In this document: positions 23,100 to 27,206 of the stretch, piece after piece
Layout: each line of letters opens with the position of its first letter
Position numbering within the stretch: the first letter of the stretch is position 1
Assembly: GCA_907165135.1 (NCBI GenBank)
Contig: OU015568.1
Span: 14,891,208 to 14,955,207, forward strand
Length of the DNA: 64,000 nucleotides
Direction of reading: 5' to 3'
From: Oikopleura dioica
Taxonomy: Eukaryota > Animalia > Chordata
The notes under the pieces: generated by a model
The model's input: the letters and a program-made list of their open reading frames with translations, nothing else
Database searches by the model: none
Told to the model about the DNA's origin: nothing
Program-made: the position numbers and the translations under genes

Positions 23100-23953
23100 T
23101 CACAAAATCGAAAAATTTTCTATCGAATTCAAGAGTCAATTGCATTTGTTCCTCTCATTTTTTTAAGTTCACTACATTTTTCATCATTCCACTGCCCATT
23201 TTATAGCTCTTACATCTCTTTTTCTAAGGTGATTCTATGATGCGTCAATTTTATTAATTCAGAATGGCTGTGAGAAAGATTGAAATTGCCGTAGAAATTC
23301 CAGAGGAAACGGAAACAGTGTTCTGTTCCATGATCAGACTTGGCCGGGCGGTGATGATTTGGGCTGGATTGAATCAGAATTTGGGGAGCATGGCAATGGC
23401 AGTTCCGGCTAGAGATGGGAAGACTGCGCTTTGGTGAGTCCTTGTTGATTTTTAGCGGAAGTCTGGTGATCTTGAGGGATCTTTTCGGACGATTTTGTAT
23501 TGTGGAAACACTTTTCAATTGAAAAACTTTGCCGAAAAGATCAATTTTAGCTGATAATAAGACTTATTCTCATTTTATAAGTAATCATCCACGAATATAG
23601 TCAGTCTATTCAATATCGATTGATTATTTATAAAAATTTTTGCTATATCTAATTTTAAAATAAGCACCGCGCTGAAAGACCCTTCTGCACGTGGCTGTCA
23701 GCTGGCTACCCGGCTATCCTCTCGCGTCAAACTGCAAGTTCTCTTCTGTGGCAATCTAGACGAAGGGCAGGATATTATGTGGAAATGTCTTGAAGCGAGA
23801 CTGAGCGAAGAAATCGCATGCAATCCCGATTTCTTCGCCATTTGACCATGATCATTTGATTTTTGTAACTAAATAAACATTTTCTTTCTCATTGCCCAGT
23901 TACTTCCTGTTTTGTTCTTTATTTTGTTGTTCAGACACTCAATATTCGGTTAT

Positions 23954-26075
23954 ATGACTAAAAAAGAACTCTTCATAGGCAGAATAAATGCGGCGGTGAC
24001 CAACGAGCAACTGGATCACTACTTCAACAGTTTTGGCCGAGTGAACTCATTCAAGCGACCGGTCGATCGCCGTACCGGCCGCAACAGAGACTTTGCCTTT
24101 GTCAGCTTTGTTGAAAATAACGTTTTTGAAAGTAAATATATCGCATGCTCGAAATTCAATTCCTACTTATTTTTACGTTGATTGATCAATAATCAAAATT
24201 AATAATTGCATGAAAAAAACTAACAAAGAAAGAAAGTTTGACAAACGGTTAAAATCCTCGTTGATTTTTGCTGATTCTGAATGATGTTTACTCAATTTTT
24301 TTTCTTGTCTATTTCGCAACATCTGTAATTGATTTTTAAGGGGTTCGCAATTTCCAGAAACATAGCATCAACGGCTTCCCCATTGACGTGCGCGTTTCCA
24401 TTCCAAAGGAAGACTTCCGAGCGAAGCGCAAAGAGGAATCTCTCGGTGTTGTCGAGCTCGATCAATCCGAAATCGGAAAAAAGTTCTACAAGAATTCTAT
24501 GCTAGAGGATCCTTGGCGGAACTGCAATCCTCAACAAGTAAAAACATTTCCCTCTTTTTCTTATCCTAACCCACTTTAGTCAGATCCGTCGCGAGCAAGG
24601 CTCGATCAGAAGGTTAAACATCGCAACCGGCTCTTCCACCGAGTCGGCCAACAAGAGCACCAACAACAACTGCAACAGCAACACCAGCCAAACCACCACC
24701 ATCAACAGCACCCGCATCATCAGCAGCACCACTTCCCTCCCAACCAACGACCGCCGCATCCGAAAACTTTAAGCAACCAAATTCATCATCAAAACAGTCC
24801 AAAGCAAAGCAAAACGCAATCGCCGCAAAAAGTTCCCCCCGTCGCCGTCTTCTTCCTTCTCAAGCAACTCTCAACTTCCAGTACAAAGTCCAAAAGACAG
24901 CCCTACTTCTCGCCCGGCTGTAATTCCCGCCACGCAGCCTCAAAAAGCGGTGCCGACAAGTCCCGCCAGCGAAGCCGCACGGTCCCAATCCGCCCCACAA
25001 GAGGTCTCATCTCCGCCCCAGCTCCAACGCTCCGCCATATCAGCCAGCAGTAGTCAGAATATATCGCCGGCTCCTGTTTCCGCTCCGCCCCAAGAAGAAC
25101 CGAAAATCGAGAAGGCAGAGGAAGAAAGCGTGCAGAAATCTATGCCAAACATTCAATCACAAAAGCAGGCTTCTCCGGCTACAGGCCCCAAGTCGCCTCT
25201 AAGTCATGCTAAATCTGGGACAAGGCAGCAGCCTGTCTCTCCTTTCCGCCCACAAAATCCTAATTTCCACTCGAGCACGCCTCCGTCACTCAGGCCTCCG
25301 ATACTAAGGTAAACCAAACACGAACATTAATTTTAAAAGCGAAAGTAAAAAGCAACTTCATTTTTTTCAAACTGTTCTTAATCAGAGCTCCTCCCGGCCA
25401 ACAAGCGCAGGCATCGCCTTTGAGCAAGCAAAATCCACCGCCACCACCGCCGCTGAAAAGAGCCCCGCAACTGGCCCCGAATCGCTCGGAGCCGCCTGCA
25501 CAAATGCCAAAAATCACGAGCTTCACGAGTACCACTGGTAACCCACTACAACAGCAACAACAACAGACAAACACACAACAAAAACAACCACAAACAATTC
25601 CTGCCAGCAATTCTGAAAATCACCAATCGCCCAGAATCCCGAAGAACGGGGAGCAATTTAATCTTTATTTAAACAACAAACTGCCAACGTCAAAGGTTTT
25701 TGAAGATCCCCCTTCATCCCCATTTCTATCAAACTTATTTCTAGGACGATTTCACCGTCGATAAACATCAAGGAATCAATCTCGCCTCCAACGTGGATAA
25801 AAGATTACTGGAATATTTTATTCGCATCTTTTTAAATAACACGAACAGGGATGTCATCAAGTTCAGCAAATTGACCCCCCAGCAACAGGATATTCTTGAG
25901 GCAATTGCTGATAAACACGATTTGGGCACGCGGGCTTGAAAAAAACTACATATTTTTGAAGGACTCAATAAGGGATCGTAAGATAGGGAAACAACCCCTA
26001 TTATCATTTTTTGGAAAGACCTATTTCAAGCCCCGAAAACAGAAAATAGCCAAGAGAAAACTGGTTTTGTCATAA
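23954..26075 (+). CDS. RRM protein carrying an MPLKIP/TTDN1-type motif and a long Q/H/P/S-rich region
   Basis: RRM ELFIGRI...RDFAFVSF...HSINGFPIDVRVS; FYKNSMLEDPW at 24484-24516; 42-nt intron 24538-24579 with cctaac branch point; one frame change near 24835 unexplained; 3' end approximate. Confidence 0.7.
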
Positions 26076-26224
26076 GAAAAAATTCTTAATCTTCTATTGC
26101 CTTTACAAAAAGTGTGCCAAATTCATTTTCGCTGCTTTGATACAATCTTCGTTACAACAAAAAGTGCATATCTATATCGAACGCGCCTATCCTTTTCTGA
26201 AATGAATAAACCTTCTTTTAGAAA

Positions 26225-27206
26225 ATGGAACAAAATGAGCAGCAATTCGGCCATTCAAGAGGCCGTATGAGGCCATACCGTGGAAGGCCGCGCGGAAATC
26301 GAGGATTTCACAGAGGCGGGCCAAGAGCACCCAAACATTTTCAAAATAATGATCGCGTACAAGTTTGGGGTGATAACACCCACTTGGAGCCCGATTACAA
26401 TTACATGGTAAGTCGTGGGTTCGTGGAAGTTAAAAGTTCGTTAAGCCCGAATACCGTAGATTGTTCAATAGCCAAAATCCTGGACTAAGGAAGCATCAGC
26501 CCTTATCGCCCCTCCGTTATCTAATTATTATGTTCAGAGCCAAGGACGGGGACGTGGCCGCGGTTCCGGGAATAATCGAGCTCGCTACGGCACTTATCAG
26601 CAATTCCATTATCGCCAGTCGAAGCCAAGGCTCCAGGCGCCCGTGGAGTCCTATTTTAAACCTGACATGCTTGAAGACCCCTGGAAGGACTGTACGCCCA
26701 TTCAAGTGTCCGAAGTGACGAAAATACAAGCAGCAAGCTCGTTTCACAAGAATAGGCTTTATCTAAAGCTTAATCAGTTCGAGGGTGGCGAGCGCGACGG
26801 GCTAGGTACTTAATCTACTTCCGTATTAGTTGAATTTTGTCGATAGTGAAAACAAGCTCGAGTTCATACAGAAATAACCGTATTTTAAGACGATTTGGAC
26901 GAAAATTCTGAGCAAAGCGCCGCGCCCGATGGTAAAAAGATTAAAGTAGAAGGGACAACTCCAAGTTGGATGAACCCACAAGAAGAGAATCCCGACGAAA
27001 TCAACCTCGATTCTAGCGATGACGATGAAGAGGACGTTGAGCCAAAAGTCAAAAAGGCGAAAAAAGAGGAAACGCCCAAGGAAGAAGATCCAGAAGAAGA
27101 GGAGCTCAACGACTGGAAAGACGCAACTCTGGACCCGCAACTTATCGACCTCGATCCTTATGAAGTTCAAGAAGCAAGAGCAGCGAATGATATGGGATCT
27201 TACTAG
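26225..27206 (+). CDS. MPLKIP: MPLKIP/TTDN1 homolog with probable acidic C-terminal exon
   Basis: R/G/P-rich N-terminus; exon 2 (from 26490) encodes VESYFKPDMLEDPW; GT-AG intron 26806-26889 joins in frame to the acidic ORF ending at 27206. Confidence 0.75.

Follow-up and report, generated by a model that had tools for sequence, protein, structure and literature searches.

Why two neighbouring genes should both encode the short motif by which TTDN1 and SICKLE bind the debranching enzyme DBR1, and why one of them should join it to an RNA recognition motif (RRM), is the question raised by this locus. It lies in a 64,000 bp stretch of Oikopleura dioica DNA (contig OU015568.1; hereafter the window, whose numbering is used for all positions without another label), which is part of a 64.3 Mb, 19-contig eukaryotic assembly with tiny GT..AG introns and spliced-leader trans-splicing. 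Gene 1 (23954-25939, five exons, ATG at 23954) and gene 2 (26225-27206, three exons, stop codon at 27204-27206) are both on the forward strand. The first-pass annotation of this DNA had described two adjacent genes with the motif of the MPLKIP/TTDN1/SICKLE family (PF15502, IPR028265), and both peptides are indeed present, FYKNSMLEDPWRNCNPQQ in gene 1 (24484-24537) and SYFKPDMLEDPWKDCTPIQV in gene 2 (26649-26708). The interpretation favoured here, with a probability of about 0.55, is that gene 1 is an old paralogue of TTDN1 in which the targeting module is now an RNA-binding domain and the motif binds DBR1.

The MPLKIP motif in gene 1 and gene 2

Both genes were searched exon by exon, with the exons left unjoined, and the full-length evidence comes only from natural mRNA-derived proteins. 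The Pfam queries were 23954-24130 for RRM_1, and 24343-24537 and 26538-26804 for MPLKIP. Both genes match PF15502, with gene 2 exon 2 (32.7 bits) over the gathering cut-off of 28.9 bits and gene 1 exon 2 (24.6 bits, E = 2.8e-5) under it. Two orthologues of gene 1 score over the cut-off (P0005, 32.6 bits; P0042, 29.7 bits) and two score under it (P0023, 23.2 bits; P0003, 14.4 bits). The core motif S-M-[L/A]-E-D-P-W is matched in full by gene 1, which has S-M-L-E-D-P-W at 24496-24516 (the F codon of its peptide begins at 24484), and at 6/7 positions by gene 2, which has D-M-L-E-D-P-W (the S codon of its peptide begins at 26649). Across all six reading frames of the genome, PF15502 matches the gene 1 and gene 2 sites alone.

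In the case of gene 1, the motif is fused in frame to the RRM, as had been reported: both are encoded in the exon 24341-24537, in one frame, and the joint of this exon with exon 1 is seen in RNA reads. The description of gene 1 as an RRM plus the motif is correct as far as it goes, but it overlooked a third module, an R3H-like domain at the C-terminus.

Structure and transcripts of gene 1

The RNA reads are from a sister lineage, 90-97% identical to the window, and contain a fragment of a spliced leader that matches the one of Oikopleura dioica. Exon 1 (23954..24131) carries the start codon and the first half of the RRM, including RNP2 and RNP1; it matches RRM_1 and is covered by RNA reads. 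Intron 1 (24132..24340, GT..AG, phase 1) is confirmed by RNA reads and is at the same position in species B, C, and D. The joint is crossed at 24131/24132 by 35 reads from three runs (7+14+14), which pass into exon 2 of the sister lineage and translate to E-R-V-R-N-F-Q-K-H-S-I-N. In exons 1 and 2, all differences between the RNA reads and the window (11/11) are at third codon positions, 6/6 in exon 1 and 5/5 in exon 2.

Exon 2 (24341..24537), which has the match to Pfam MPLKIP, completes the RRM and continues through a basic/acidic linker of 25 residues to the motif. Intron 2 (24538..24579, GT..AG, 42 nt, phase 0) is a frame-based prediction, with introns at the corresponding place in species B, C, and D; it is supported by the mRNA-derived protein P0023, in which ...NCNPQQ runs straight into SDPTRARF, matching the window from 24580. 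Exon 3 (24580..25308) encodes KHRNRLF at 24616-24636 and then a long Q/H/P/S-rich disordered region, and is a single open frame in L021, a contig of a sister lineage with ~72-86% DNA identity to the window. A contig from an RNA library crosses 24709-24839 of this exon with 3- and 6-nt indels only. Intron 3 (25309-25385) is predicted only. The proline-rich exon 4 (25386..25695; PPPPPPLKRAPQ ... EPPAQMPKITSFTS) was placed by tblastn, being 57% identical to residues 198-273 of P0023, and its 3' end is set by the RNA-confirmed joint over intron 4 (25696..25744, GT..AG), whose 49 nt are skipped in 2 reads of run X9 and in one 293-nt contig of run X1. Exon 5 (25745..25939), encoding the C-terminal R3H-like domain (LLEYFIRIFL...), aligns to the C-terminus of P0003 and P0023.

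The open reading frames (ORFs) of P0023 (345 aa) and P0003 (367 aa, from a cluster of 34) cross all intron positions uninterrupted in their source contigs, which means that they represent spliced RNA. In each, the RRM, the motif (FYKNSMLEDPW in P0023, YFKPNMMTDPW in P0003), H-R-N-R-L-F, a P/Q/S-rich disordered region, and a conserved C-terminal domain are held in one ORF, and gene 1 is therefore a single gene from the RRM to the C-terminal domain. At its start the mRNA contig of P0003 has the 3' portion of the spliced leader found in the RNA reads, so its source is an oikopleurid-like animal.

The frame of exon 3 moves by one base at an A5/C6 stretch (24827-24841, with C6 at 24835-24840). As the whole exon is one open frame in L021, the window has one base too many at the C6 run; this is likely to be a homopolymer error of what is presumably a long-read assembly, or else a frame shift private to the window. 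Other genes of the assembly may share the problem. A small intron as the explanation of the frame change was rejected, since none of 163 candidate introns was decisive and the comparison with L021 shows the exon to be continuous.

Three reads of run X9 have the spliced leader joined at an AG within codon 8-9 of gene 1 (23977-23979). A joint there would delete the ATG together with RRM strand beta-1, and the site is probably a minor cryptic acceptor.

Paralogy, age, and selection

The motif regions of gene 1 and gene 2 are similar over 18 residues (E = 1e-7), and residues 95-155 of P0023 align with gene 2 exon 2 over 40 ungapped residues at 35% identity (E = 2e-10). The longer alignment takes in the motif and also a second element, H-[RK]-N-R-L-[FY], which is 20 residues past the motif at identical spacing. 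The form HRNRLF is common to gene 1, P0003, P0023, L016, and L017, and the form in gene 2 is HKNRLY. That 40 residues of ungapped similarity reach past the motif indicates duplication, rather than convergence, as the origin of the two genes.

The proposal of a local duplication thus stands in so far as the genes are paralogues, but the duplication is not recent. The tandem order of RRM gene and then MPLKIP gene, on one strand, is found again in L021, where it is followed by the same AK6-like gene, and the tandem pair is also present in species B (L012), where the motif exon is only 43% identical. The duplication and the fusion are therefore older than the split of these species. Indeed, the exon structure of the RRM-motif gene is found in at least four further lineages (species C, to which contig L016 belongs, species D, P0042, and P0024), and the intron positions after '...VFE' and after 'C-x-P-x-Q' are common to the genomic contigs of four lineages, L012, L016, L017, and L021.

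Relatives were collected with HMMER, using the 65 residues of gene 1 exon 2, which gave three real clusters, and with a profile word search, which gave further ones. Among the results of the HMMER, word, and feature searches there is no RRM-motif gene outside the oikopleurid-like group, although with so short a query distant relatives may have escaped detection. The motif exon has no relative among the PDB sequences; in the word-index searches gene 2 exon 2 matched nothing and residues 1-150 of P0003 matched only their own cluster; and the feature search of the ESM Atlas returned generic RRM clusters only, all with scores ≤0.82.

Every lineage of the RRM paralogue has retained D-P-W with the [FY]-[FY]-K flank, as well as C-x-P-x-Q and HRNRLF, and a perfect SMLEDPW is kept in the O. 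dioica-like lineages and in species C. Between the window and L021 the proportions of synonymous (pS) and non-synonymous (pN) differences are 0.72 and 0.03 in gene 1 exon 2, 0.58 and 0.03 in gene 2 exon 2 (86/89 aa identical), and 0.45 and 0.04 in gene 1 exon 5; in gene 1 exon 1 all 6 changes are synonymous (59/59 aa identical). Judged from these substitutions, both motif exons are under strong purifying selection.

A separate feature of this comparison is that the end of the upstream PAC4-like gene, the spacer, and gene 1 exon 1 (23675-24141, against 5909-6361 of L021) have 86% DNA identity, compared with ~72% in the rest of the locus, and that the pS of gene 1 exon 1 is just 0.16, compared with 0.6-0.7 elsewhere. 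This would suggest constraint at the nucleotide level, perhaps from trans-splicing or operon processing.

Domains of gene 1

Gene 1 exon 1 matches RRM_1 (PF00076) at 43.1 bits (E = 3.9e-11), and P0023 does so at 41.7 bits over profile positions 1-66 of 70. On reading the sequence, the aromatic residues of RNP1 (R-D-F-A-F-V-S-F) and RNP2 (L-F-I-G-R-I) are present. The model of the species B RRM is confident and its fold matches hnRNP A1, RBM38, Hrp48, and AUF1, with Foldseek E values of ~2e-7 and template modelling (TM) scores of up to 0.87 on the target. By its PF00076 score, which is over the cut-off, its beta-alpha-beta-beta-alpha-beta fold, and its aromatic RNP residues, the domain of gene 1 belongs with the RRMs.

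The C-terminal domain of species B, modelled alone, has a predicted local distance difference test (pLDDT) score of 88.9, and R3H domains head the list of its structural matches: Fap1 (Z 8.0, root-mean-square deviation 1.8 over 60 residues), Smubp-2 (Z 7.3), and SPAG7 (Z 7.2), with 1whr and PARN scoring lower. Going by the model, the domain is R3H-like only and is not counted here as a member of the R3H family. Gene 1 ends early, at ..KHDLGTRA-stop (within 25925-25975), both in the window and in the independent contig L021, and as it is common to the two, the early stop is old and tolerated. A remnant of the lost hairpin can be read in the +1 frame after the stop as GLEKNYIFLKDS, which matches the last strands in P0023; this remnant reads G-L-E-K-N-Y-I-F-L-K-D-S.

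Gene 2

Gene 2 is the canonical TTDN1/MPLKIP (SICKLE) homologue of this Oikopleura-like tunicate. Its exon 1 (26225..26407), an ORF with a GT donor, encodes an RG-rich, aromatic-containing disordered N-terminus, and there are RG-rich orthologous exons in L021 and L012. Exon 2 (26538..26805), with the Pfam MPLKIP match, encodes an RGRGRG stretch, the motif, and HKNRLY (26745-26762). Exon 3 (26890..27206), an ORF in phase with exon 2, encodes an acidic tail with NPDEINLD and DPQLIDLDPYEVQE, which is kept in L021 and in species B. On inspection, RG repeats and spaced aromatic residues precede the motif in gene 2 and also in its orthologues, which is the layout of the family. In gene 1 it is the folded RRM that precedes the motif, and the disordered G/P/R/aromatic-rich region that the family has there is absent.

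The acidic tail of gene 2 (26950-27010) has N-P-D-E-I-N-L-D followed by an acidic run, the corresponding sequence in species B being N-P-D-E-I-E-I-E. The DBR1 gene of the same genome (L003, 1797-2334) has D-P-D-E-I-D-L-D with an acidic run, and also D-P-S-E-I-Q-L-D.

Proposed function and alternatives

In human TTDN1 the CR1-2 region is necessary and sufficient for DBR1 binding, with E146 and D147 important; the disordered N-terminal region binds the Aquarius intron-binding complex, and a fusion of DBR1 to this intrinsically disordered region (IDR) makes TTDN1 dispensable (bioRxiv 10.1101/2022.11.03.515106). The catalytic efficiency of DBR1 is 19-fold higher with TTDN1 (PMC10470207). SICKLE binds DBR1 via SMAEDPW, the replacement of which with alanine abolishes the yeast two-hybrid interaction and weakens recovery by co-immunoprecipitation (bioRxiv 10.1101/2023.07.25.550414).

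By analogy, the gene 1 protein would bind both DBR1 and RNA. It has kept the 40-residue module [FY]-[FY]-K-x-S-M-L-E-D-P-W ... H-R-N-R-L-F, and in place of the disordered N-terminus it has an hnRNP-type RRM, 25 residues ahead of the motif, with a long disordered region and the R3H-like domain after it. The motif may bind, and perhaps activate, DBR1 as in TTDN1 and SICKLE, while the RRM, with the R3H-like domain, could hold DBR1 directly on single-stranded RNA, either excised introns or by-products of trans-splicing. Such a route would replace or supplement the one through the intron-binding complex that the TTDN1 N-terminus provides in human cells. A more specific idea is tentative: appendicularians would have evolved a dedicated RNA-bound tether for DBR1, independent of the Aquarius complex, in which the TTDN1 motif is joined to an RRM along with the R3H-like domain. 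Genes in this clade are extremely compact, introns are tiny, and trans-splicing is heavy. The tether could be an adaptation to introns so short that the intron-binding complex has no room ahead of the branch point, or else to the Y-branched by-products that very frequent spliced-leader trans-splicing leaves behind; the connection to tiny introns is speculation.

Several observations weigh against the proposal that gene 1 is a paralogue of TTDN1 bound to DBR1 and targeted by its RRM. The RRM paralogue has MMTDPW in species B and MIQDPW in species D, so that the Glu equivalent to human E146 is lost while D-P-W and the flanks are kept; the canonical copy is still MLEDPW in both species. As far as can be judged from sequence, this loss weakens the simple concept of a second DBR1 adaptor for these two species. 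The PF15502 score of gene 1 is under the cut-off, and there are hardly any RNA reads on gene 2. None of P0003, P0007, and the window exon matches Pfam R3H (PF01424) at E≤1; the C-terminal domain lacks the R-x3-H signature, the fold scores behind the assignment are middling (Z ≤8), and the domain is shortened in the window lineage. The frame shift in exon 3, if real, removes the C-terminal third of the gene 1 protein, leaving the RRM and the motif intact.

The loss of the Glu in species B and D, where Thr or Gln stands in its place, is also what would be expected if the motif had been re-used for another partner, or had taken on a structural role beside the RRM, and gene 1 were an ordinary RNA-binding protein that arose from a TTDN1 duplicate and does not bind DBR1. 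The sub-threshold Pfam scores in the window and in P0003 point the same way. This is nevertheless doubtful, given the perfect SMLEDPW in the O. dioica-like lineages and species C and the residues kept in all lineages around it; when residues of a disordered linker are conserved in this way, a conserved partner is implied, and for the motif none but DBR1 is documented. If gene 1 does bind DBR1, its role might be to compete or to regulate: it would take up the site used by gene 2 and divert or sequester the enzyme from spliceosome-coupled debranching, instead of bringing it to RNA. The two genes have the same 40-residue module and stand side by side in an apparent operon, so they are likely to be co-expressed. 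However, an intact RRM with its aromatic RNP residues, under strong purifying selection, suits targeting better than a passive decoy, which makes this a rather less likely account again.

That gene 1 is a decaying pseudogene, its resemblance to functional genes having no present function, is improbable. The frame change near 24835-24840 and the loss of the last hairpin of the C-terminal domain, of which a remnant persists in the +1 frame past the stop, might be taken as decay, but the former is at a C6 homopolymer and is absent from L021, and the latter is shared with L021 and therefore old and tolerated. There are transcripts in the sister lineage, and pN/pS in exons 1, 2, and 5 is ~0.05 to 0.1 or lower. 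Least probable by far is a chance or convergent likeness between the two motifs. The core motif is short, but the similarity extends over 40 ungapped residues with the second element at the same spacing, and the genes are adjacent, are the sole two family matches in 64 Mb, and keep their tandem order in other species.

With gene 1 taken as a TTDN1 paralogue whose targeting module has changed, the locus bears on the modular nature of human TTDN1, in which a short motif holds DBR1 and a separate region sets the destination of the enzyme, and for which an artificial DBR1-tether fusion can substitute. Here the targeting module has apparently been swapped in nature for an RNA-binding domain and kept under selection beside the canonical gene. 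If its protein binds DBR1, gene 1 would be a natural test of how debranching is steered to its substrates, and would show that they can also be reached by a second route, independent of the spliceosome. With H-[RK]-N-R-L-[FY], the family also gains a second element in its conserved module.

Genomic context and partner genes

Four genes are in a row on one strand between 23264 and 27700: the PAC4-like gene (stop codon at 23843-23845) upstream of gene 1, gene 1, gene 2, and an AK6-like P-loop kinase gene (from ~27314) downstream of gene 2, with 108, 285, and ~110 nt between neighbours. In the RNA contig L020 (1-1517) all of gene 1 is present in spliced form along with the 3' end of the PAC4-like gene, also spliced, and this points to a polycistronic operon transcript. 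Species C (L016) likewise has a PAC4-like gene upstream.

DBR1 is present in the genome (G000:C5:6929176-6929612), split over at least six exons, as are Aquarius and a gene of the CwfJ/Drn1 type. A full-length DBR1 ORF was sought in the JGI metagenome contigs, where every match was genomic and interrupted by introns. In the Aquarius homologue (L034, G000:C5:14783220-14784410) the match to the N-terminal Pfam model falls within one open frame of 976 codons, and the gene is therefore nearly intron-free here.

The back-translated MLEDPW pattern occurs at six sites in the whole genome, compared with ~0.24 expected. The four sites outside gene 1 and gene 2 (L007-L010; G000:C2:2284766 and 2288128, G000:C5:14790565 and 14793195) are exact, but were rejected as genes: they are in open frames of 18-23 codons within a repeat family on C2 and C5. 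On self-alignment this family has internal tandem repeats ~57 bp apart and inverted pairs, and it is without a long open frame. The pair on C5 follows the Aquarius gene at a distance of a few kb, probably by coincidence.

Comparison with known systems

The family and its motif were already known. In the literature searched there is no mention of the RRM fusion, of the R3H-like domain that accompanies it, of the conserved tandem pair, or of the second element, nor any description of an RRM combined with the MPLKIP motif; the only paper with both 'MPLKIP' and 'RNA recognition motif' is unrelated, and the papers on Oikopleura and lariats are silent on gene 1. Public domain databases may already list an RRM-MPLKIP architecture for predicted Oikopleura proteins.

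The single RRMs of hnRNP A/B, AUF1, and RBM38 are similar to that of gene 1 in sequence and in predicted fold; no protein of these types is known to have an MPLKIP motif or an R3H-like domain. The R3H domains of Smubp-2, yeast Fap1, SPAG7, and PARN are the closest structural matches to the C-terminal domain of gene 1, which differs from them in having an additional N-terminal beta hairpin and, in the window lineage, in being without the last two strands. Arabidopsis SICKLE is proline-rich and mostly disordered, with S-M-[L/A]-E-D-P-W as its only conserved element, and gene 1 is likewise proline-rich after the motif; SICKLE has neither an RRM nor an R3H-like domain, whereas gene 1 has both. Gene 2 is like human TTDN1/MPLKIP in having a disordered G/R/aromatic-rich N-terminus followed by the Y-F-K-P-x-M-L-E-D-P-W region, to which it adds an acidic tail of ~100 residues with the NPDEINLD element. 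Gene 1 has the same motif module as human TTDN1, but with an RRM in place of the disordered N-terminus and with the addition of a long disordered region and the R3H-like domain.

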